Shown: positions 41,898-64,000 of the stretch, one piece after another | Layout of the letters: each line of letters begins with the position of its first letter | Numbering within the stretch: the first letter of the stretch is position 1 | Assembly (NCBI GenBank): GCA_964035545.1 | Contig: OZ037766.1 | Location: 22,370,767 to 22,434,766, forward strand | Direction: 5' to 3' | From: Bugula neritina | Taxonomy: Eukaryota > Animalia > Bryozoa | DNA: 64,000 nt | Notes under the pieces: model-generated | What the model saw: the letters and a program-made list of their open reading frames with translations, nothing else | Told to the model about the DNA's origin: nothing | The model's database searches: none | Program-made: the position numbers and the translations under genes

Positions 41898-44800
41898 ATG
41901 AATTATCTACATACTTTACAATGGAGGCCGTTATATTACTTGATTATACTAGTATTAGCTATTCATGGATCTAAGGAATTGAATTCAACTACTCTTCAAT
42001 GTCCGGAAAACTCCTCTGTTAGTATTATTATATTATTTTGTAGTTGTTTTATTGACAAAACAGCAATAATGTAATTATTATAGACAATGTGATATTATAG
42101 TTTAAATATAGGATTGTTAATTTACTTGTGCTAAAAAGTTACATCCACATAATATTGGCATTATTGTGCTGCAAACTATAATAATAGTATATTCCACATT
42201 TTATTCTTACAGCAATATAAAGAAATACAGTCAGTTAATTTAATGGTAAAGTTTTAAATAGTTAATATTATATATTAAAGTTTTTACTAACATTCGAGAC
42301 TAAAAGTAATGATAAGTCTATAGAGCTGAATGACTGTTGGTAAAGATCATAGGTAGCACAATCTCTTTAATAGTTTAAATCTACTTTATTCAAAAATATG
42401 ATTTAAGTAAAACTATTTTACTAAGAAGCAAAGAACTAGTTTGTTTGAACTTGCATGTATTCGTATTGAACGTAGTTTTAACCAAATACCATGAAGTAGA
42501 GTTGAACAACACCTTGTTGATATTATAAAAAAAGGTAGAGCTGGTGCATTTAATATAAATATATAGTAAAATATATAATCTAGCTATTACAGTTAGGTAT
42601 AATTAGCATACTTACATACACCTGAATTCATTTATTGTCAATTATCTTCCTAATACTTTACATAAAGTACTTTGCTCTTATACTCCGAGAGGTATACTGA
42701 AAAAAACCCTTTAGAGTTTAGTTCATCAATAACTGAAACTGTAAATACTTAATTCCACATAACACTATAATTTTTAGTTATATTTCTTTATTTTATATTT
42801 TGCATTTTAACTATGCAGGTAAGCTTTATATTTTCCAGCTCTGCATAAACAAAGAAATTAACTAAATGTTGAGTTACAAAGTACAACTACTGAATCAAGT
42901 CACACTTATTGTAATTGTTTAATTTAAATACAAACCAGCATTGAAGTTTTTCCTCTAAGGAAAACTTGAACAAAATAAAGCTGAGATGCTGTCAATCTCA
43001 TCATTTCTTTTAGCTTCGTTAGCAGTTCACCCTATGTTTGATTATAAAGCCATAATAATATTGATAGACTAAAGAAAATAGCCACAAGACATATGCTCCT
43101 AAACCCAATTATTGCAGCTCAACAAGTTTTTCATATATGAACCTGATGATTTAGTGCAAGTAGAATTGTTTGCATCAAATTTACCAAGACATTGAACGGT
43201 ACACCAATTGTCAGGAATCAACAACTTTTTAACTGACTTTTGTTTTTTATCACACTTTCATTCATTTGGATAACAACAGAGTAACAAAGCCTAGCAAGGC
43301 TGTGCAAACTGTTGTAATTATGTCTCAAGACATCCCATACATATACAACCATATATCTCGACATTCTATTATACTCAGTTATAGATAATATTGTGCTAGT
43401 CAAATGACTTACAGCACTTGGAGCTGGGTATAATAAAGCAATAGAATTGCAGCTATACATGCCCATACATTAACTTGATACGAAGTGGATTTAATTCTTC
43501 TCAAAATGTAGCCATCATTTTGTGTAAGAATTCAAACATCCTACAGTATCTAGTGTATAGTTTCTATTGAACATCATAATAATACATTTACTCTAGTATT
43601 AACTTCTTCTCACCTTTCTCCGCCATTTCTTGATCGATTTGATGAAGATCCTTGTTTATTATTTGAACTGGCATCAATATACTTTTCAATGGAATAGAAT
43701 TTTAAAAATTTAGTAAATCTTAGTAATAACAATTTGATGAAAGCTATGTGCTCTGTATGGTAGAAATGATTAGATTCTGTTGGACTCTGCAACATTTCCT
43801 TCCTTTCTCTGCCATTTCCTGATTGATGACGATGGGACTCTGCAACTGTTGTTTAATTTATTCTAAATCTGTATTTAATATTATTCTCCTACTGTAACCC
43901 TGTAGCACATGGCTACATCAACTTTAATTTAAAATTAGAGCTGAAGTAGGAGCTGTATAATATAAACAATCAATAGAAGACCATTCTTTGGGCAACTCAT
44001 TAGCTAAAACAACTTAATTAAGAAAGTCAAACATGCAATGCAAGAAAGTAATTGATTTCTAGGATTTTATTAGCATAATTAATGTGTATTAACAGCTGTG
44101 TCTTGTCACTATATTATATCTTACATGCTTCAATAAGATGCATTTTTAATTATTAACTGTTAAACACATCAAAAGTTTTAGGTTTTCATATCATAGTTTA
44201 ATATCCAAACTTTCAAAACTTGAAACTTGAGGCATTGTGGTTGAAAAATATGACAATTTTTCACTGCAGCTGAGCAAATTTTTCTACTTGTATTGTTCCA
44301 GCAGTCAGAACTAAACTCCTTTCTGTGGACGTTGGAGAGAGATCCACCCTCCTATTTCTTTGGTACAATACACGTGCCTTACACCAGAGTCTGGGACTAC
44401 ATACCTCTGAGTGCAAAGAATGCATTCCGAAATGCTGAAAACGTGTATTTTGAGCTTGATTTGACTGATGGCAAAACGGCGGCAGCTCTCACCAACTGCA
44501 AGATGCTGTCGGATGGAGTAACCTTGAGTGATATTCTCTCTAAAAGACTCTACCGAAGGCTGACTCGTTACATGGATTACGTCAAGAAGCAGATTGCTGA
44601 CTGGACGAGCAAGGAGCAGAGGGGTCGGGGCATCAAGACTGACTATTACTCAGACTATCAGTACAGGTTAGATCTCAGACTATACTGTGTTGGTGTAAAC
44701 CGGCAGTAAAGATATTACATTCTTTCTTTACTGAATGTAGCAGTTTGCACCAGAAAGGGCAGAAGTTCTATAAACTCGTGTGAAATACGAAGTAATTCTA

Positions 44801-47800
44801 TGTTTTGAATATAATTTGTTTACGATTACTATATATAATGATATTCATGGTAAGTGAGTAACTACACATACACTGATCAGTTTATATGGAATTATTCTCA
44901 AATTTCTTAACAACAAAAGAACTTCAGTAAAAAAACCTTAGCAACAGTATAATACTGAGTAGTAGGAGTTATGAAATTACACAGTCTTTTCTCATTTGCT
45001 CATATCCTGAGTAGTGTTTAGCTAAAATAGTCTTTAGTTTAAATTCCTTTTGCTAAATGCTGTAATATTTTTGCCTTAAAACCCAAATAGTTCTTGAACA
45101 GATTATACAGTGCAATCTGCCACACAACAGTGTTGTTTAGTTGAAGTATAAACAATCATAGGTGGTTGTTAACACTTGACCTGCATGCCCACTCTGACAC
45201 GAGTCTGTTTCCACTTCACTATCTTACTGTATATAAAGTTAGCTAAAGTCAAAAGCCTGCTAATTATCACTTCACTTTTACAGGCCAGTTTATTTACAAC
45301 TTAATTGTTTGTATACATGCATGTAATAGTTTATTATGGTACGGGCCTCATGTTTCTACCTGACATATAGCACTTAAATCTATATGCTCCAACTTAGCTG
45401 CATCTGCCATCTAGTTTATAAAAAATTTACGATGTTTTTAGCTAAAGCTCTCAACAACAACAATGGATGAAGCTACACACACGCACACGCACACACATGC
45501 ACACACATGTACACACATGTACACACATACACACACGCACACGCACACGCACACGCACACGCACACACATGCACACACATGTACACACATGTACACACAT
45601 GTACACACATGTACACACATGTACACACATGGACGTTTATTTTGTAGAGCAATTGTTGGATCGTGGCAAAGAATGAAGCCAGTATGGCTGATGTTGTTAC
45701 TAAACTCCCTCACCAAGAGCGATGTAAGGCTGTTTGGGGTGCCGGTGTTAGATCTCTACCTGTCCCGCCAAGCCTCCCAATGGAACAAGAGAATTGGAGC
45801 TATAGAAAATGTAGCTGACCAGTGTGAACCCTTGAACCAGCTTAACCAGACCCAGGTAACCTCTCAGTAGCAGGGTATGTCTTACAGGTACATGGCTAGC
45901 ATCAGACTATGTCAAATTGATAAACCACCAATTTAGCTTCTCTTGAATGTTTAAAACTTCAGAAATTTTCTTGTTGGCGGTGGCTGCGTTTATGCAGGTA
46001 AAAGTTGCATAAACTTCAAAAGAGAATATTTGTACTAAAAGAATAAAATTCCAAATCATTGCAGCTCTTTGTATTATGTGGTAATTTTTAGCAACTTGAT
46101 TATTATATCAGTGATTACAATAACTTGCTTTTTAAATTCAAAAATAAGTTGAGTTCAAGTTAGTTTTATTTCTGACTGAAGTGCAACTGTCAAGATACAA
46201 GAAGTTTACAATCTTTCATTTGATAATATGTAATAAATTAACCAGGCATATTGCAGTTTAAATCAATAATTGATAGCTAAAAAACTGTTAAAAGTTTACT
46301 GGAAAACCAAAATTTTTTTCATAGCACTGATATCAGAATGAACTTTTTTTAAAAGATCTTTATTGGTATGAACTTTTAATTTAGTAAACTATTTATTATG
46401 CCCAAATAAATGGCTTTAGATTGGTTAGTGCAAAAAGTATGAGAATGTTTAGCTTTAGGATAATGATTTTAAAAATTTGCCTGATGAGTTACTCATACTT
46501 TTTTTTGCTATTATGTATACGCAGCAATTAGAAATATTTTTATTAAAATTTTGGTATCCTAGTATTAGTATTGAAAATATTTTGAGAAAATGTTTTCTGT
46601 GATGCTTGCTGGCTAGCTTGACATTGCAGTTGAATACAAATAATTTAACCATTAAATTTAGTACAAAATACAAGTACTTGTATATATAACCATTGTTTTT
46701 AAAATTTAAGTACCATATAAAATGCAAACTATATAGTACTGTTTAGCTTACAGGTCTTACCAAAGGAAATTATATGAACTTTTGCTATCAAATTTTCAAA
46801 ATGCCAAAATTATATTTTACTATAATTATGCATCTCAAATATACAACACAAAAGATGAGAAAAGTTATTTAATGGTTGGTGTTTTAGTTTTACAATTATT
46901 TGCATGCTAAGGAATTGACCTAGTTCTACCTTTCTGATAGATGTAACATGCATGTGAACAAGCTGTATCTCTGCCAGTTTTATCTGTCAACAATAGTTGT
47001 TTAGTAAAACCACAACAAGTTGTTGTACATCATATGTCACACAGTTAGATGCAACTCAGCTTTACTTTTTACAAAACAGATAAGATAAAATATCAATTGG
47101 TTTGGGGGGTCAACTGCCAGCAGTCCATCACCACCACTCTAAGTGTGACTGCAGAAGTGATATTTTTAGTTAGGTCTGCCAGACCAATATTTAACTGTTA
47201 TAAAAAAAGTTTGTAAGCTTAAGCTACGCTGTATTATAGATGAGAAATCTCTTTGTAGTAAAGTTTTAGTAATTAATAATTAGTCCAAGAACGTATTGAA
47301 AATAAAATTATTCTAATAATGTGCCTCATGAAAGTTTGCATTGTACTTATTCTTTCTGCTTAAACTTAACCAAAAACTTAAAATTTGTTACAGCTTAAAT
47401 TCTTCTTGAAGAATTCGTAGGTTTTAGTCTATGGTAAAATATTCTCGATAACTAAATTCGTGACTTTTTAATATTTTCAAAATCAACTTTTTTATTGTTG
47501 TCTTAAATGCTGCAAGGTTCTACAAAGTTTTCATATTAGTGACTCCTTTCTCCAGATATCTGCTTCAAATTCAAACTAAAATATAGACTATAAATTATCA
47601 TAATGAGATGCATTGTACACAAGTCTGTCTCCATTATAATGTCTATCTCATGTTTTCACAAGAAACATTTTCCTATCACACATAATACAAACATTAGAAT
47701 TGTTCCGAACACAAAGGAACCTTACTCTTGTCACCTCCACCTACTCCAGTTACTGTCATCAAGTAATTATCATCACAAAAGGAGTATTAGAACACTCATC

Positions 47801-50800
47801 ATTATCTCAATCACCAATTTGTGCTCTCTGACTCAGAAAACCAATTATGCAATTAACTGTACCTTCAGGTTTGTGCATACACGTGCAGGTTTGTAAATAT
47901 TGATTCAACTTCACTATTCTCATGTTCATCATACTCAACAAGTATTTGATGAATGTTTTCACAAGGGATTATGGTAGTTTATATATCAAATAATTAGATA
48001 GTTATTGCATGAACTTTTTCAACAAGCAACTAGTAAAATGTTGCTAATAAATGGTCATAAATACATGATTCATCAGACAAACTCTGTCATAGTTGCCACC
48101 ACATGCACTCTAATATTAGTTATAAATAGCAGCTATAAATAGTAACTATGAAAATGTTGACAAATAACTATAAGAAATTTGAATTTGAATCACTTTGTGG
48201 CAGTAACTAGATACATTTTAGTATAATAATGTGCTAATTAAACTGTCTTGCTTTGTCCTCAAATACTCTCAACACAATGCAGTGCCTGTATCCAACCTTA
48301 GTCACATTCCTACTCCCAGTTGCACTCATTATAATCCTGGTGGTGGACAAGACCGCAGCTAATTTATTTCATTATCTCACCTCTGGCTAGGCTCATTCCC
48401 AGTGTTGACTTAATTAGTTTCTCACAAGAGCTTATTTTCATAATGAAAGGCAAACTTGACAAAGTTATAATTTATAGTCAATAGTGAAAATAATCTAGTC
48501 GATAGTTGAGAGGGAAATTTTACCAAAAAGGTAGAGAGATTTTTTCTACTTAGCTAAATTTTCTAGCCTAGAATGACATTACTTCCTTTTACAAAAATTG
48601 CCGTAAATCTCAGCGTCATGCTCTAGCACAGGGCTGTCTAACAGGTGGCCCCAGGGCCGGATGTGGCCTCTGGCATACATTTATGTGGCCCCTAAAGGCA
48701 TAGAGCTAAAACTAGTTTTTACAATATACATGAATTAAAGTGAAAAACCAACTATTAAATGTCTTATTTATACACATGCCACAAAACATGCAGCCTGCAT
48801 TAACTATTGGGACTTTATTGTGTAATGATTCATAAAAGTATGAAATAAAATAATTTGAAAAATACTGACGTTGTGGCCTCCATCACAAGCTAGAATTTAC
48901 AATGTGGCCCTCGCCATAAAATGTTTCCTTTCAGTGGCCCTCGATCTAAAAAGGCTGGACACCACTGCCCTATAAACATGTCTCCATCAATGCACTTTGA
49001 ATTTCCTGAAACAAGAACATATAACCTGTTAAAGTTTATTCAATGTTTATTACTTTTCAATCAAGGAATTTACTGCATTCATATTTTATGTACAAAGAAA
49101 ACTATATTCTGAAATTGTTAGAGGAAAACAAATTGGTTTTTTATGTATAAGTGAATCCTTTTATTTGCATAAATCCCAGGGCTAGCTGAAAGCAGTTATA
49201 TCTATATGTACTTGATTACTTTATGGTTAATATATTAATTCTGTCTTGTATTTCAACAAATTCAATTATATTTTCTCCAAGACAACAATGCTGTACTGTA
49301 AAAATAATTAAATTACGGAAAGTGATAGGTGCTTTTATAAAATAGAATATCCTAACTCTTTGATATTTATAATAATCTTTAGGTGTTTGATTGAAGTTTC
49401 AAAGCTGAAGTTATAGTTGGCAAAAGTCACAGTTTCTCGGATGAGTTTGACTTTGTTTCAAACAAGATAATATTGAATTGGTTTTTCTCTAAAATGAATT
49501 ATTACATAATTAAGCAGTCGTAACATGGATTGCAATGTACAGTGAAATAAAATGCGCTGTTTAAAGTATATGATGTACCAACATGTTCATCTGTACTCTT
49601 GCTGCCTTAAGTACAGAGCAAAGTGTTATTATTACTAAATTCATGTCTAATTTCTAAGCATAAGCATATACTTTAGTATGGTATCCGGTAAAAATGGCAC
49701 AAATGGCAAAGTAGGTAAAAACGTCACATTTTCAACATTAGGGTTTGGGGCGTGGTGGTTGGGGGTTCGGAATGAGGATTTAGGTTTGGGGATGGAGGTT
49801 AAAGTCCGGGGTTGGGGTTTAAGGGTTGGGGGTTTGGAAAAATTTAACACTTTTGTGCCATTTTTACCTACTTTTACATTTGTGTTATTATTACCTGTGC
49901 CATTTTTACCGTGCCATTTTTACCTGTGCCAATTTTACTGGTGCCATTTTTACCTAAAATCACTTTAGTATAGCAATATTGATCTATATTTATTATTTTC
50001 AAAGCCCTAATTTGTTTATATAATGTGTATTAAAAAGATATAACCATGGTTACAAAATAAAGTTTGTGAAAACTCCACTGGCTATTAATAGGAATTATGT
50101 GATTTAATGTAATTTTAATTCAAAAGTACGAACTTAATTAATATACCAAAGTAGGTAGTAAAATCAAATAGCTTTATGATGAATTGCTAACAATAGGTTC
50201 AGCATAAACTTGATACCTAATTATTGAGATGCTAATGCAGGTAGTTTACCTGTCATGTGACCTGATGCTATATAACGCATTGATTTTTTCACGTAGCATC
50301 TAAAATAGTCTAACTGGGATTTATTATAACAAAATGTATGCGTATATTAACTAGGTAATATTTGCACTAGACGAAACTCTAAGACAACATGAGCAGCAGA
50401 GGAAGAAATCTCAGGCTATGCCAGAGAATGAAGAACTCATTTCCCACTACAACTGTGGAGATCTACCATCAATTTTATTGAGGAAATCCACTATAAGGGT
50501 GAGTGGTATGCTCTTACTGCTTTCACATGTGCTAAAATATCTAGAAAAGCTTGGATTAAAAGCAATTAAAAATATATCAACTTGAATAGTTTGTTCACCA
50601 AGTTCTTTACTAGCAGCTAAAATGTGCATCGCCTGCCAAATTTTATTTTAGCAGCTAGTGAAACTTATTTTTAATTTCAACATTTCATTTCGAAATAGCA
50701 TTTTTAGTACTTATTTTCTGTTTTCAGTGAATTTGCTTATAACATTTAAAAGGCTATTTTAATAAATACACTTTTTTACTTACAATAACTTTATATATTT

Positions 50801-53800
50801 GATGAGTTGAGCACTTCTAAGACATTTGCTCACTCAAAAGTTTTGTATTTAACATATACATGTGCAGTTGTCTAGCATTTGTGTGTGATGCTCATAAACA
50901 TTTAGTTGTAGAAAATAAAACAATGCATTAACCATACCTATTCTATTATATGCGTTTTCTTTGCTTAGGGAATCGCATTCATGAAAAGATAAACATTAAT
51001 TCTTTACGTAAAAACCTATATATTTAAAGAAAAAAGCTTGAAACTTAAAATACCAGTTCAATTCCAGCACTCCATGTTAGTACTATTTATAAACTTAAGC
51101 AAATACTTTTAAAATAATGCTAATTTCTAATCAGAAGCTGAAAAATGACAAAATGTTAGTTGTATAACTAATAGTTTTATGGTTTGCCAAAGCAAAAACC
51201 CCAGATTTTTTAGCCACAGACGTTTACAGATCTCATTGATTGCTCATTTATAGCAAAAGTACAAAAAACATGCAAAAAGATTGATTGCTTTAATTTTTTT
51301 TTAGAAACCAGGTAACTGAGCTAAAAATAACTCACCCTAATCTATTCACAGGTTGACCTAGACTCAGTAGAAGATGGAGGTCAGTTGGAAATGGCTCATC
51401 AAGTTGATGACTACTTTCGACAGAAGTTACTTTATAACAGAAACCAGATCATGGCTGAAAAAATAGAACAACTCCTGAATAACAATCCTAGTCAGAGTTT
51501 CTTTTTCGCTGTCGGTGCAGGTAACTTGCCAACCCTTACGTATTCTTTTCCTCGGGGTTCTCCACTATTGTCAAAATTTTCTTGTAATTAAATGGGAGTT
51601 TTTATATCTAAAAAAAATTACAACTTAAATTTTCATAAATTATTTTTTCAATTGCTTTATTTGATTTCTGTACAAAAGTTTAGCAGTCATTTAATTATTT
51701 GTTTACAATTTAGAGGGCCTGGTGTTGACCCCCAAACCAAATTACTTTTTTGTTGGATGTTTCTACCAAGTTGGTCGTTATAGTTGAGTGCTTTAAAGTC
51801 GAGGAAAAGTTGTTCAAATACCTCAAAAAGCCCCTTCAAAAATAATTTCAAAGAAAATCTACTTTCAAAATGTTTCAGACTGCTTTAGATACATAACTTA
51901 AATGTTATGCTCATTTGGAACTAGCCATACCTTATTTTGTCAGTTTATTCTTTTATAAAGTATGGCAATTTCTATTAGACACATCAGAAAACAAATTACA
52001 TTAAACTATTTTTAACTATATCAAGTGAACATACAAACAAAACTTTGCAGCCACCATTATATTGCATAGCATGGCTGTAATTAAACAGGTGTAGAGTTGT
52101 CTTTCTTCAACTAACTTGATTGCACCGGCAAAGGCAATTATAATTTTCTTAAGCAGAGTCTTGCATTATTTCATTGGGTGTGCTTGAATATACAGGTGGG
52201 GACGAAATTTGATTGTGTTCAGTTCCTTAATACTGTTTCAAGGTTCTGCTTAATTTATCAACTTGACAAATACTATTCTTCCTTTTTTATTTCTGAATCA
52301 TATGAGGGCATCACCCTTTACATTACTGTGAAACTGTTTTTAGGCCACTTTCTTGGAAACAATTCTGTGATTGACAAACTTATATTAAAGGACTTCCCTA
52401 TTAAACATACGAGACCTGAATCAATTATCCCAAGCCAGTAAGTGCAGTACACACACTTCATATAGCATATATACTATTCACAATGCCACATGTTGCGAGC
52501 TTGATACTTAAGTATTAATTCATAGCATGCCTGTCACAAGGACAAATAGTTAATAGCCAACTACAATAGCCTTCCATTTTACTTTACTTTTTTGTCCTTC
52601 ACCATGCACTGCATTTTAACAAAGCACCAGGTCATAGTTTTTCAACAGCTATGCAACATGTTGAACGTTTTTACATTCAGCAAAGATCTGATGACAAATC
52701 TACATTTTAGTACAACTAGTAACTGGCATACTTCCTTTTTCAAAATCATAGCTATGCCTCTCGCCAAAACTGTAGGTGTATTTTTATAGTGTCACTTTTT
52801 TGTGGTCATTAAAACAAAATTAATGAGTGTAATAATTATGTAATCACTTAGAGCTGGATTTAATGGTTATGGGGCATGCCAATGAAATAGTTTTTCTACA
52901 TGCCTTCTAACAGCTGTAATGTTTAGCCCAATATAATATACTGTGTTTAGCCTCTGATGTAGAAAACAGAATATTATATGCCTCAACATAGTTTGTCAAC
53001 AATATCTTACATTGAAGTATAAATAATATAACTCTCTTCTCAGTCTCCTAAAAGAGACAGTTTTATCAGATTAATATCAGCTTACGGCAAGCCATCAAGT
53101 TGACCTACTAACTGCATAGAGATTATTACTACTTCAGTTTTCTACTACTGCATTTACCTGAAATACCATATAATATGTTGAAGCTTACTTGCTTGCAAAA
53201 AAGTTATAACGGATATTTAAAAGAAGGTATTTGGTGTTGAAGTTGAAATTCAACTTTTTTGCATCTGAATTTTCTTTATGTTTGAATACTATACCATTAT
53301 CCAGATAAAATGCTTCTCACATTTTTCATACATACCAGAGAGTCATGTTTTTAAGATTCCACTATTTCACTTTTGAATTATTTGCGACTTGTCAGACAAA
53401 CAATATCGTTAATCAAGGTCATATCTAATAACATTATTCAACTTTTCAGAAATATAATACGCTTCAAAAAGTTATTTACTTTAAAGATTTCACTCTATAT
53501 GTGAATGGCATTTTTTAAATTGCGGTCTTCAGCATCTTAAATTTATCGGACAGCTGTCTAAGAAGTAATGCTTCAGGTGTTCTAGCTGCGAGAATGTTAG
53601 CTTACTGTTGATCGATACATAGTTTGGTATGAACAACAAAAACTTTTTAACAGCTAAATTTTGATAATATTAAGTAGTCCTATACTTGCTTTACAAATGA
53701 TGACGTTCTGCCTTGTAGATCAAATCACGATGCCAGATATCAACCAGCAGAGTTTAGTCAGCTGGATTCTTCAGCCATTATCAATCAACAATATATACAA

Positions 53801-57536: not shown

Positions 57537-60097
57537 TTATTGAGAGTTATTCTCAGTGCTAGGCTGCGTTTCTCCAGTAGCCTCCATTTTGTCCGCCCAA
57601 AAATTGTCCACTTTGTTTCGAATATTCTCATTTTCTAACCGCCATTCTTTTTGCCATTGCCTGAGTTCTTGAATCTCGCTTTGTCTTCTCACTAAGAATC
57701 CTCTCCAATGAGATTGAATGACAAGGGCGGCTTCTTCATGTGTCCATATCAATGAAAGTGGTAGAGGTGGCCTTGGGCTATATGAAGTAAAATAAAATAA
57801 GCTGTCATGAGCAAAACGTAAAACTTAGAAAATTGAAGATGTATCCTTCACAAAACAACCTAATATCATAAAAATCAAACTAAATCAATATTCAAATATT
57901 TTAAATAACTTAAGCATTACATTAAAATGCTAAGACGATTGAACATAATATACAGGTTTTAGCAACAACACATTATAGAAGCAGTTCAACATCTCCATAG
58001 CCGTAAAACATTATGCTTTTTAAAATGAATGACATACTATTACTTCACACTTTATTTAAACAATAAAAAATTGACAAAATAATGTAAACAACGTTACAAC
58101 TGTGCTATACAGCACCTGTTATATTCTTTTAAGTTAATAAAATTTGAAGCAAACATATCTTTAGGTGATAGAGAAAAAATTATTTAGGAAAGCAGCCATG
58201 CAAGTGCATTTGAAAATTTTCTTTTACACAAATCACATAGTTAGCAATCAGGCAAGCATATTACAGATAGACCTGTTTACGCCTGTATAATATTTTGCTA
58301 TATAGTCTAAAGCAGCATAATCTTTGTAAATAACCTTTAGCCAAATACTACAATTTAACCATTAATATTTTTACAATTGAGCTGTTTGTTTATAGCAATC
58401 TATTTAGAGCAATTAGGAATATAAAAAACAATTGCCATTTAAACACAAGGTTTGATTTTCTTTGCAGACTATAATATGATAACGAGACAGCATAATGCAA
58501 TACTCTAGATGTAACAGCTCTGTATTTCCTAAAGTATGTTACTCACTGTTCTTTTAGGTGTTCTTTCACAAAGGGAATGTCAAACAATGTCATCTCTTTT
58601 CTCTCATCCGACTGGTGCCTCGAGTTATTTCTAAAAAAAATAATTTTAACAACTTGAAGAAAAAAAAATGCTGGAGCATGTACTAAAAGGTTCTTTTTCA
58701 AAAACATAATCACAAGTAAAATATAATAATTAACAACAATATAATTATAAGCATATGAGCTGATTGATCATTAAATCACATATCTTTTTATTCAATTTCT
58801 TGAACTTACTTGTAAAGATATTCTGTGATAAAATCTAATGCATTGAACTTAGTCCTCTTTCTCTCAAAACATTTTTCTTTTTTAGCCAAAATGAGCATTG
58901 CCTCCATTGCAGGTAGTAAGTGAGGAAAGACATAGTGTTCTAAATATACTCTTGGGGGACCTACAGATTATTAAATGTGATATAACTGGTATTATTGAAG
59001 AAAAACACATGAGACTGGCTAATGTTGGGCAAATTAAAACAGACGTTTAAGAAATTTTTTCAAATGCAATTGATTTAAATATATATATTCTTTGCTGTGT
59101 AAATAACTAACATCCTACAGCAAAAATAAATATTTTTAAAAATCAACTGTCTTGTTAGCATGCTTTTACTCAAACACACATCAATTTTATTAAAAAGAAT
59201 TGTAATAAGGTAACCGGAAAAGTTTTACGTAAAAGCCTAATTAGTGTTGTTTATTGGTTGCCTTACATTTGTCTCGGTTTGGTAGCTCCGGTTTAGTTTC
59301 TGTAGGTTGAACTTTAGTAGGTTCAACAAATGTGTGACCAACACAAGCTGGGTGTGAATGAGATGAATTGAATTCTGTATTTAAATCAACATCCACTGAG
59401 TTAATCTTTTCATGCATTTTTCCATAAAAAACCGGAGTGTGCTTGCCAGCATCATAATTTACAAATTCCACCTCTTTCTTTGTTTTGTCTTCAAAAGGTG
59501 GCCTTTTAGACTCATATTCTAACAATTACACATTAATAGCCATTGTATTACTAACTAATCGTAAAAGGAACTGCAGTATCTAACAATTTGAGCTAGATAT
59601 ATCAAAACATCCTAGTTGAAGGAGTATATCATGTCATGTAAGTAAAAAAATTAACAACTAACAAACTTAATTTATATTACTATGCAGATTTGCCAATAAC
59701 AAATGTTTATTACATTATGCTAAATTCTGCAACATATTCTAATTGCACACCACCAAATACTTTAAATTTATTCTTTTTTGCGACAACTTTGAGTTTTTAA
59801 AAAAAACATTTGTTCATTTGATGATCTTGTATCACAAAAATATTGTGCTATCACTCATAATATTAATAGTCAATAGTACAATTAATGCTCTTTTAATTTT
59901 ACCAGTTGCACATAAATATGGATAATTATATACTAATATATTATGTTTATATATTTGACAAGGGTGATGATAGCCAGATAGTAAGATTCATTTAAATCAT
60001 GGCTCTATGAATATATATAATAGCAAGTCAAAATTTCAATACCTCTGCATATCTCGTCCCATAGATTAGGTTCCGGAACTGTTGTGATTATCGACAT
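57537..60097 (-). CDS. IQCK: IQ domain-containing protein K, about 260 aa, 5 coding exons
   Basis: Exons 60097-60043, 59518-59267, 58960-58810, 58630-58547, 57777-57537, all in phase. Motifs NLWDEICREYE, PRVYLEHYVFPHLLPAM, KKEKCFERKRTKFNALDFITEYLY, DIPFV and PRPPLPLSLIWTHEEAALVIQSHWRGFLVR (IQ motif). Confidence 0.92.
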
Positions 60098-60659
60098 GCC
60101 TAGAAGTACAAAGCAATTCGAGTGATCATGCTAATATTTGAAACAATGGAATAAATAGTTAGAAATCAGAAATGTGAGACTAAAAGTTTAATACTACCAC
60201 TATGACTATTGTCTATTAGTATTACTATTCGTATCAGTATCATTAGCGGTATTACTCTTAGGTAGTTCACTAGTTGAATTTACAACAATTTTCTTTAAAA
60301 AAAGCTTGATTATATGGTAAGAATGAAAACATTTATATACCAAAAGTTATTTGCATAGTTCTAACAACTAAAGTTAATAAGTATAACTCAAGAATGTAAC
60401 AACTAGATAATAAAATATAAGCTGATAATTAAATTTAATTACTAAATGAAAAAGTAAATTAAAACTAGTTTAATTTAAATTACGATTTTTATTAGTATAA
60501 ACATAAAAGCATGGAAACAAGACCCTAGTTTTTACAAAATATATTTAAAAATATTTTTCTAAACTGTTGTTTAAATTTTCAATTTCCTCATTAATTTACG
60601 ACTATAGTATTTTAACAGGCCTCAAAATAAAATAATTTAATAGTCATAATGAAAAACTA

Positions 60660-60810
60660 AAGATAACAATGCTGGTGTGAATTTAGTTGCTAGGAGTAGG
60701 ATTACTTTATTAGCGTGTCCAATTAAAACACATGTGCGCAAAGGTCAAGGCTTATTTCAGAATTCGTATCCAGTTCGTAGCTCAAAATGATAGTTCGATA
60801 AACGTCGGTA
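60660..60810. promoter_or_regulatory. Probable bidirectional promoter core, IQCK / ANAPC13-CIR1
   Basis: CpG-containing island in AT-rich DNA between the divergent genes. RFX half-site GTTGCTAGG at 60686. Flanked by periodic A[C/G]T tracts like the other promoters. TSS not directly visible. Confidence 0.45.
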
Positions 60811-62152
60811 AACGACCATAGTCATAATGATAATGTGCTTGGAATAATTATTATCATAATGATACTTTGTTTTGTAAATGAATAGTAATGGTCATAGATT
60901 AAGATTATGAGTATCAATAGCAATATGATTATCGTAATGATGATTATAGTGATAGTCATAGTTGCGTTGTACTCTTACTGAAACCAAAGGCAAATGTCAA
61001 ACTGAGTAACTCAATCGGTCAATCACAATGTGAAACTGAAAATGAATGTGTTACCTGTTACTTGTTAGTGTTACGCGTTTGGCTTTACTTTACTTTAAGT
61101 TTTAGTTTAAGTTTAGGTTTAAAATTAGTTTAACTTTAAGTGAGTTTACACTTTACACTTACAGCTTGAGTTACAGTTTCACTTTCAGTTTGAGTTAGAG
61201 TTTCACTTACTGACTTAGTGTTAGTCATACTGATAGTCATAGTGATACTCACACCAGATAGTGAGATACTCATATTCATAATCACAGTGATAGTCATAGT
61301 CACCGTCACAGCGTTGCGCTTACACTAACACTTACTCTTAGTCTTACAGTTACTGTTAGTGTTGCACTTACTGCTACTCACTCAGCACTCTTGGACTCTG
61401 CGTCTTAAACTTATAGTAATAGTTACACTTATACAGTTATACTTATACAGTTAATGTTATACAGTTAATGTTATACTTATAGTAATGCTAAGTCTAATAC
61501 TAATACTAATGAGTAATGCAGTAATAGTAATGCTAATAGTAATAACATCATTGAAATTGACGAATTTAAATTTCACTAGTTACATTCAAAGTGAAGATGC
61601 CAGGCAAATTACTGTAAAGCTAAACGTAGCTGATGCCAGTCACAAGTCTTAGAATTAAATCTTCAACATGATTACAGAGTGACTTTAACTTAATATTTTA
61701 AATTATCACTAACATTGTCATTGTGATTGTCAGTAGTTTAAATAATAAGATATAAAACGTAGTAGTTATAGACGACTAAAGAATAAAATTTAGAGCAATG
61801 GTGAAATCAATGTAGGTTTATTATTTATAACCTATAAATATCAATGATCATTATATCTATAAGCATAATAGTGTTCATTAGATTAAATTTGTCATTGTTT
61901 TTTTTTCAGTAATGTTTATATTTTTTTCTTTTAATTTTAATATCTCTGTAATTAAAATTTACATTTATTTTAATTTTAGGTTGCTCTTAGGTTCAGACCC
62001 TACTAAATATAACAAGTAATACAGTTTTTATGTGTAAATTTATTGTCCAGGTAATTATATGTCTAAGCTAGGCTACAAAAACATTATTCACTGATTTCTT
62101 ACTTAATTATTTTACAGCAAGATTACTGAACAACCGATTAGACATTTTCACG

Positions 62153-62167
62153 ATGAGAAATGAGTGA
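62153..62167 (+). other. 4-codon upstream ORF (MRNE*) overlapping the ANAPC13 start codon out of frame
   Basis: ATG AGA AAT GAG TGA at 62153-62167. The ANAPC13 ATG is at 62160. Confidence 0.6.
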
Positions 62168-62393
62168 CAGCCAGTGCAGAAGTTTAAGACATCTAATCGA
62201 CATTGTAGATCCACGTTGGAAAAGTGAAACTTTGCCGTTTGAAGACATTGCTGTGCCCCACACTGAACTTCCTGACCCTGAGCCCGACTCAAACGGACAG
62301 CCAACCGAAACTCTTTCCGAGCAGGAAAGAAAGTGGTCAGATTTGGCTCTGCAACTACTTAATCAACACATCACATCTTCAACTTCTAATTAA
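62160..62393 (+). CDS. ANAPC13: Anaphase-promoting complex subunit 13, 77 aa, intronless ORF
   Basis: MSDSQCRSLRHLIDIVDPRWKSETLPFEDIAVPHTELPDPEPDSNGQPTETLSEQERKWSDLAL aligns end to end with APC13 (MDS...ILDLIDDAWREDKLPYEDVAIP..ELPEPEQDNG...EQEMKWTDLAL). Confidence 0.93.
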   Translation: MSDSQCRSLRHLIDIVDPRWKSETLPFEDIAVPHTELPDPEPDSNGQPTETLSEQERKWSDLALQLLNQHITSSTSN

Positions 62394-62418
62394 CTTGTGA
62401 ACTATACTTAAAGACACC

Positions 62419-63922
62419 ATGGGTAAAGGATTCCATAATTACATGTCAAAGAAGTTTTTCCATCCTGGCAGCTTCGAAAATATAAAAAAAGTATGGATGG
62501 CTCAACAAAAAGATGAACACAAGAAGCGTTCTGAAGAGGAGACTCTTGCTCAATATCAGAAGGAGCAAGAGATATATCAGGTATGAGAAAATTATATTTT
62601 TTTGCGGTTTGTGTTTTAAACTTGCTGAGCCAAGTTAATGAATGCTTAGGCTCTTTTTGGGTCGTTTGTTGATAAATGTATAAACTAGTTAGCCTCAATT
62701 TAAGATTGACGATGTATATCTTCTCGTTTCTTTAGAACAGAGCCTTGTTGGGTGATGAAAAAGCTAAGTTAGGATTAAACTTCATGTATGACCCACCGCA
62801 AGGTGTTAAGAGAGATCGTGAGAAGGAAGAGAACGAACCAGAGTACAAGTTTGAATGGCAAAGACAATATAATGCTCCGAGAGAAAACTATGCCAAAGGT
62901 AAGCAAGTATAATATACCACTAATAGTTGCTATAACCTTTATCTTTTTACTGTGAGTTGAACATGACAATGTAACGGCATACGTGCAGCACACATTGCAG
63001 ATGTTTTACACAACTACTTGAGACTTGTGCATGAGCATAGTTGTTGTGTTAATAGAAATTCACATTTCAATAGTTTCAAGCAATTGAACAAACAATTATC
63101 TTTTATGCTTGCATCATTGCTGAGCAGCTACAGTTTTTTTAATTGGACGATAGAGTTGTATTCTTTGCTGTGCTTTGAATTGAATATTTTTTACAGTTCA
63201 GCAAAAACAAGTATGCGTGACGAAGTGCATACTTTCAAGTGAATTATGTTACAGGTGATGACACTGTACGAGATCAGCCCTTTGGCATAGAAGTTAGGAA
63301 TGTGAGATGCCTAAAGTGTAGGAAATGGGGCCACATCAACACAGACAAAATCTGCCCCCTCTTTGGCAGCTCTATTACAGCTGAGCCACCACCAGCTGCT
63401 GGGAGTAACCCTGGTGAGTTGATGGAGCAGATGGCTGAGGAGGGATTAGCTTTCACTAAGAAAGTGATGAGTAGACAGAATGACCCAAGTGCTGCCAACC
63501 AGCAGCTAGTGCATGCTGAGGCTGACGCTGACGAAGAAGTAGGTCAACTTCTTGTATGAGTTTTTATTTTTCAAATTTTATTTTTGAGACAAAATATCTG
63601 TCAGGATAACATAGCTTCCATTATCTATCTTTACCACTTGTTGTCATTGTGCTGTAATTTCATGTATTTTACGAGCACAAAACCTACTAATAATGGAGGA
63701 TTGTTTTATAACAATTCTAAACTTAACAATTGCAGATTGCCTTCTTTCTCAGTCTATCAAGGAAAGAAAAAAAGAAACTGATTAAAAAATTAGAAAAGGA
63801 AAAGAAAAAAAGAAAGAAGGCTAGGAGACGAGAAAGAAAGATTAAGGGAGCAGCTTTCAGAGAAAAACAGGAAAATGAAATTGGTGGAGCTACTAAGCCC
63901 GTGGAAGAGGCTGCTGGAAAAG
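62419..63922 (+). CDS. CIR1: Corepressor interacting with RBPJ 1 (CIR1), 5' part; exons 62419-62580, 62736-62898, 63255-63538, 63736-63922; continues off the right edge
   Basis: [31 protein letters not shown] (Cir_N), [50 protein letters not shown] (zinc knuckle) and a Lys-rich tail. Phases are consistent. Confidence 0.95.
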
Positions 63923-64000
63923 GTAAATATTGTACTGTTCATTCATCATTTCAGTTCTCAGTAATGTGGTAGTTTTCTAATATTTCTTTGTATGCTTCAA

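Follow-up and report, generated by a model that had tools for sequence, protein, structure and literature searches.

A probable bicistronic ANAPC13–CIR1 mRNA in bryozoans with a micro-uORF across the first start codon

ANAPC13 and CIR1, which are separate loci in vertebrates, probably share one bicistronic mRNA in the bryozoan Bugula neritina, as judged at the level of assembled RNA contigs, with translation of both open reading frames (ORFs) predicted. Ten lineages retain the intact pair, with intercistronic spacers of 25–97 nt. On balance, we favour a mechanism in which CIR1 is reached through bypass by an overlapping micro-uORF and reinitiation, in addition to leaky scanning. To our knowledge, APC13 and CIR1 have no pathway in common, unlike MOCS2A and MOCS2B.

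The window, by which we mean the whole 64,000-nt stretch that was analysed, carries the pair close to its end (Table 1). The initial annotation had described an acceptor at 62117, a 77-codon ANAPC13 ORF, a 25-nt spacer and a CIR1 ATG at 62419, and all of these coordinates were recovered in the sequence; the ANAPC13 stop lies 187 nt from the first downstream junction. ANAPC13 was identified by the Apc13p domain (PF05839, E 6.7e-10) and by a match to ANAPC13 in the PDB (E 1.3e-18), its nearest named homologue being Bugula neritina ANAPC13 (94%). The first CIR1 segment matches Cir_N (PF10197, E 7.9e-13). The window exons of CIR1 were handled singly, and for comparisons at full length we used the CIR1 of a natural contig, L021; it matches CIR1 in the PDB with E 4e-66, against E 0.004 for CWC25. 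With Cir_N, a zinc knuckle and this closer PDB match, cistron 2 belongs to the CIR1 rather than the CWC25 family. The C-terminal RS region of CIR1 (L031, last exon, beyond the window) contains near-perfect tandem repeats of ~27–33 nt. An Rfam scan of the window gave zero matches.

Table 1. Features of the ANAPC13–CIR1 locus, in window coordinates
Feature	Position	Strand	Remarks
IQ-motif gene, first coding exon	60043–60098	−	Spliced RNA; divergent from ANAPC13–CIR1
3′ splice acceptor	62104–62117	+	TACAG at 62117, opens the shared exon; from sequence
Shared exon	62118–62580	+	Short 5′ UTR, micro-uORF, ANAPC13 ORF, spacer, CIR1 codons 1–54
Micro-uORF	62153–62167	+	4 codons (MRNE), out of frame, overlaps the ANAPC13 start; A at −3
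ANAPC13 ORF (cistron 1)	62160–62393	+	77 aa, intronless
Scanning corridor, AUG-free and unstructured, start codon to start codon	62163–62418	+	
Intercistronic spacer	62394–62418	+	25 nt; no ATG, no poly(A) hexamer
CIR1 first coding segment, Cir_N (cistron 2)	62419–62580	+	A at −3, G at +4
CIR1 intron 1	62581–62735	+	GT–AG, 155 nt, spliced in four runs
CIR1 exon 2	62736–62898	+	RNA contigs
CIR1 exon 3 (zinc knuckle)	63255–63538	+	Domain search and RNA contigs
CIR1 exon 4	63736–63922	+	RNA contigs; gene runs past the window end

A single ANAPC13 turned up when the 216-Mb genome was searched at the protein level and with Pfam; a second, expressed copy, which the initial annotation had named as a possible refutation, was thus not found. 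Comparison with the NCBI B. neritina sequence gives a dN of 0.031 and a dS of 0.147 for ANAPC13; against the other lineages, dN is 0.16–0.32 and dS is saturated. Between Bugula and the remaining lineages, silent sites are saturated and both proteins are conserved. Purifying selection on both ORFs, together with the sole ANAPC13 copy, argues indirectly that both encode functional proteins. ANAPC13 as a pseudogene was rejected, since it is the sole genomic copy found and is under purifying selection. A fusion or readthrough protein was also rejected, since the phase between the ORFs varies among lineages; in the window, a TGA at 62398 closes the CIR1 frame and thus precludes an ANAPC13–CIR1 fusion.

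Upstream, a divergent gene on the minus strand (57537–60098) carries an IQ motif further along its length, and sequence resembling its first exon also lies upstream in L017 and L008. The promoter of the pair should lie in the 2-kb region bounded by this exon. Between the divergent genes, positions 60810–61560 hold low-complexity degenerate repeats that are poorly conserved and draw unrelated contigs. A TraB-family (TIKI-like) gene on the plus strand (41898–52441) is a further upstream neighbour.

The RNA data are short-read contigs from runs X2, X7, X9 and X10, each from a different study, placed on 58600–64000 at about 4% divergence from the window. In each of the four runs, a single contig spans 62131/62139–62578 and continues through GT–AG introns to CIR1 exons 2 and 3, with exon 4 on the same contig record in two runs. 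Inside CIR1 intron 1, no run shows contig depth beyond the contribution of exon 2. Contig depth, a weak measure, is comparable between 5′ end and body in all four runs; in X10, the body contig has a depth of 178.8, and three short 5′ unitigs together reach 176.7. Among the best-supported joints listed, no contig break or junction was seen in the spacer in the four runs. Short-read assemblies lose minor isoforms and cannot display single molecules; continuous contigs, matching depths and an empty intron 1 are what would be seen if no monocistronic isoform dominates, but could also arise because assembly drops minor paths. In a metatranscriptome contig from another species (L021), which ends in a poly(A) tail, ANAPC13 is followed after a 68-nt spacer by a spliced CIR1 of 396 aa. 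The earlier proposal that one transcript contains both ORFs is thus supported by contigs from four studies and by this polyadenylated contig.

The upstream partner of the acceptor at 62117, whether a cis first exon or a leader, was searched for and not found. A 71-nt exon-like segment (61981–62051; acceptor at 61980, donor at 62052) is ~95% conserved with NCBI B. neritina and has zero RNA depth over the resolved part (61858–62038); no other cis first-exon candidate upstream of 62117 has RNA coverage. A further acceptor-like site lies near 61910. The partner could be a cis exon that is short or diverged, or a leader added by trans-splicing, and leader splicing at 62118 would still give a bicistronic mRNA. 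The three X10 unitigs begin at 62116 with four unaligned letters unlike the intron; the common start and non-genomic letters of these three allelic unitigs (62112–62117) may hint at leader trans-splicing in Bugula. 5S rRNA genes form a tandem array (unit length 789 nt) at G000:C4:11198032-11257314. In the unit examined other Rfam RNAs are absent, and no leader RNA gene was evident in the repeat by eye.

The ten lineages are Bugula (window and L004–L006), L007, L010, L017, L018, L019/20, L021, L022, L027/28 and L029. All are probably bryozoans, judging from protein identity, a common Met-Ser-Asp start and a common first CIR1 intron. The initial annotation had proposed examining relatives for conserved adjacency and ATG depletion, and both hold across the ten. 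An acceptor-like AG, read by eye, lies 2–42 nt 5′ of the ANAPC13 ATG in the nine genomic lineages. No adjacency was found in Lingula, the scorpion Centruroides or four Branchiostoma (amphioxus) assemblies, and a pan-animal arrangement was rejected on these grounds. In Branchiostoma, a same-strand gene of 919–924 aa begins ~240 nt past the ANAPC13 stop (L013 8995–11754; L016 8862–11636); it has no Pfam match.

The stretch 62163–62418 is free of ATGs in the window, as had been claimed. Dinucleotide shuffles of it contain 3.2 ATGs on average (P(0) = 0.018), and a codon-aware null for the window ANAPC13 ORF alone gives P = 0.07. Across the ten lineages, ANAPC13 contains 5 out-of-frame ATGs, where its protein sequence combined with the codon usage of CIR1 predicts 19.5; the spacers (498 nt) contain 0 versus 5.3 expected. 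The ratio of NAT to NAC codons is 4:16 before G, against 61:71 elsewhere (Fisher p = 0.03), such that NAT is avoided specifically there, and codons preceding TG have the form xxA in only 1 of 23 cases; these P values are generous because the lineages are related. Four of the five surviving out-of-frame AUGs open only 1–3 codons. Unlinked outgroup ANAPC13 ORFs with the complete CDS in view have 6–8 internal ATGs. AUG depletion ahead of ORF2, invoked in the initial annotation as the hallmark of leaky scanning, therefore persists across lineages whose silent sites are saturated. Folding of the corridor gives z values of 0.05 to +2.55 in all ten lineages, never exceeding shuffles in stability; an IRES-like structure was rejected, the corridor being unstructured throughout.

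In all ten lineages, the CIR1 start is flanked by A at −3 and G at +4, and that of ANAPC13 is followed by A at +4; the ANAPC13 start has G at −3 in nine. Of the contrast originally drawn between the two, the strong CIR1 context stood, whereas that of ANAPC13 is intermediate rather than poor because its −3 G is a purine; by a context rule not derived from bryozoans, the ORF1 start would still be the weaker. The constant +4 A of ANAPC13 follows from the bryozoan protein start, Met-Ser/Thr-Asp (Met-Ser-Asp in the window), versus Met-Asp in 79 of 85 other homologues. The replacement of Met by Arg in the EMKW motif, also offered as evidence of AUG avoidance, was dropped as weak, because just 24 of the 92 motif-bearing non-bryozoan homologues have Met there.

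The ATG at 62153, which the initial annotation listed merely as a site to check by Ribo-seq, opens a four-codon uORF across the ANAPC13 start that terminates 251 nt upstream of the CIR1 ATG. An out-of-frame uORF of 2–5 codons across this start is present in 7 of 10 lineages versus 2.2 expected, the 17-nt interval used for the count having been picked after data inspection; treated as four to five independent gains, the excess has a P of 0.05–0.16 only. The uORF ATGs lie at −7, −7, −7, −8, −5, −5 and −14 from the ANAPC13 start (four distinct values), their stops fall in the first ANAPC13 codons, and the −3 base is A for five of the seven AUGs (for one of these as inferred over a splice junction) and G for ANAPC13. 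The other three lineages lack an overlapping uORF in the visible exon; two of them have a 1–3-codon ORF at +8 or +15, and outgroup ANAPC13 likewise has ATGs at +11 to +23. A solo ANAPC13 copy of L008, which no cistron directly follows, has an overlapping uORF at −17 in weak context. Closely spaced AUGs within about 17 nt compete (PMC9743702). The leaky-scanning claim thus survives as regards AUG avoidance, but leaky scanning alone is probably incomplete, because the recurring overlapping micro-uORF points to termination–reinitiation as well. We lean slightly towards a material contribution of the uORF to CIR1 output.

We propose that one promoter gives one spliced mRNA, seen at contig level, in which ANAPC13 is the first cistron and CIR1 the second. 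Cap-dependent scanning would encounter two AUGs, 7 nt apart. Initiation at 62160 would yield APC13; initiation at 62153 would yield four codons, terminate within ANAPC13 codons 2–3 and so bypass the ANAPC13 start. Ribosomes leaving the uORF would rescan ~250 AUG-free nucleotides and reinitiate at the strong CIR1 AUG, and another share would leak past both 62153 and 62160. The Met-Ser-Asp start loses the +4 G and provides out-of-frame stops that may serve to keep the uORF tiny. The pair presumably formed through a rearrangement before the ten lineages diverged. Since outgroup and bryozoan ANAPC13 alike carry an acceptor-like AG immediately 5′ of the ATG, the likeliest course is that CIR1 was brought under the promoter of ANAPC13, rather than that ANAPC13 retroposed into CIR1.

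Duplications provide natural experiments. L008 (5001–7838) and L024, two samples of one lineage, share a recent ANAPC13 duplication: an intact solo copy lies 2.4 kb upstream, and in the 96% identical CIR1-adjacent copy the start codon is gone and two stops have arisen, such that three of the nine post-duplication changes are inactivating. The two copies may be alternative exons off one promoter. The rapid decay of a redundant cistron 1 would be expected if it is a burden on CIR1 translation. In Bugula, an inverted CIR1 paralogue on the minus strand lies ~4–5 kb beyond the window end (L003; G000:C2:22437400-22438738). Its protein is 93% identical to CIR1 in exon 3 and only 46% in exon 1; it retains the last part of the spacer, has no ANAPC13 upstream, and is represented among the RNA contigs of two runs, at a lower depth. 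Because duplicated and solo ANAPC13 copies and an ANAPC13-free CIR1 paralogue exist, the two genes are separable.

CIR1 might instead be reached by plain leaky scanning of the green-algal type (PMC11291117), the micro-uORF being incidental or dampening ANAPC13 only. All transcript and AUG-avoidance data are consistent with this, as are the unvarying +4 A and prevalent −3 G of ANAPC13 beside an always strong CIR1 start, 5′ UTRs that appear short, and a uORF that is absent in three lineages and present on a solo copy. However, the overlapping AUG at −7 persists despite saturated silent sites, and the uORF recurs at other offsets, usually in better context than ANAPC13; we consider plain leaky scanning a credible but unlikely account. 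It is more doubtful that a common pre-mRNA is processed in operon-like fashion, with a CIR1-only mRNA made through an AG in the spacer region, either by leader trans-splicing or at an alternative acceptor in cis. T-rich AGs are present in the spacers of L019, L021 and L022, and an acceptor with no cis exon found and three allelic unitigs of identical start is what trans-splicing could give. Yet the spacer contigs are unbroken in four runs, although the CIR1 paralogue path, at 8–21% depth, interrupts contigs at exon 3 in two runs. The Bugula spacer offers a lone acceptor candidate, a poor AAAG, and that of L029 contains no AG whatever, so that no conserved acceptor of the SL-operon kind lies between the cistrons. 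AUG avoidance along the entire ANAPC13 ORF would also be needless, and bryozoan spliced leaders were neither found in the literature nor evident by eye in the 5S repeat.

Slightly less probable again are two overlapping same-strand transcripts merged by assembly, with a CIR1 start site within ANAPC13 and an ANAPC13 3′ end in the first exon or intron of CIR1. A de Bruijn graph is unbranched by internal starts and poly(A) tips are pruned, and an AATAAA lies within CIR1 intron 1 of NCBI B. neritina; on the other hand, 5′-end depth approximates body depth in four runs (weak though contig depth is as a measure), intron 1 is empty, canonical hexamers are lacking from this exon and intron in the window, and the tuning of start contexts would be left unexplained. 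Reinitiation after complete ANAPC13 translation, or internal ribosome entry, seems to us very improbable. Both cistron 1 (77 codons) and the spacer are short, as such a route might favour, but there is no stop–start overlap, spacers vary from 25 to 97 nt, the corridor is unstructured, the UGGGA motif is absent by eye from the 120 nt 5′ of the CIR1 ATG, and AUG avoidance inside ANAPC13 would not be predicted.

The layout favoured here, uORF bypass with reinitiation and leaky scanning, most resembles the KSHV ORF35–ORF36 mRNA, in which uORF2 overlaps the cistron 1 start and 332 nt are rescanned to cistron 2 (PMC3561293); the HBV C0 uORF is cited in that paper as a similar case. The resemblance, by layout alone, comprises a short out-of-frame uORF across the cistron 1 start, conserved in position in seven of the ten lineages; long linear rescanning (251–342 nt in bryozoans); and retention among relatives of uORF position rather than peptide. 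Unlike the viral transcript, the mRNA here is spliced and comes from an animal cell; it combines two housekeeping genes, a single uORF of 2–5 rather than 11 codons, and non-overlapping cistrons. Green-algal bicistronic loci (median spacer 40 nt in Auxenochlorella; PMC11291117, PMC7896298), for which a leaky-scanning signature has been described (PMC11291117), likewise have a short ORF1 and spacer, a weaker ORF1 context and AUG depletion before ORF2; here, the host is an animal, an overlapping micro-uORF is added, and the mechanism is read from sequence. Drosophila has 159 annotated dicistronic pairs, including Mocs2, with small proteins over-represented and spacers of −34 to 319 nt (PMC4528330), and shares with our case an animal mRNA bearing two conserved ORFs. 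SL-resolved operons occur in chaetognaths, tunicates and nematodes (PMC12460157); they too place housekeeping genes close together on one strand, but in bryozoans the mature spliced RNA retains both ORFs and the spacer has no conserved acceptor.

The class is therefore already known, because animal dicistronic mRNAs are not rare in Drosophila and the algal leaky-scanning signature has been described. What is new is the lineage-wide joining of two core genes plus a virus-like overlapping micro-uORF; overlapping-uORF bypass has so far been demonstrated mainly in viruses. Literature searches found nothing relevant on the ANAPC13–CIR1 pair or on polycistronic or trans-spliced RNA in bryozoans. More tentatively, the herpesvirus-type micro-uORF might be a reinitiation switch that sets the APC13:CIR1 ratio, retained and re-made across bryozoans as one instance of a broader polycistronic habit of their genomes, possibly together with as yet undescribed leader trans-splicing.

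For most known animal dicistronic mRNAs, the route by which ribosomes come to translate the second ORF has yet to be settled. This locus amounts to a series of ten versions with varied uORF offsets and spacers, plus an escape by duplication and an ANAPC13-free CIR1 paralogue; uORF bypass and leaky scanning therefore become directly testable against each other in a cellular gene. Gene annotation divides such bicistronic units into two genes, and the avoidance of AUGs described here represents codon-level selection within an essential protein.
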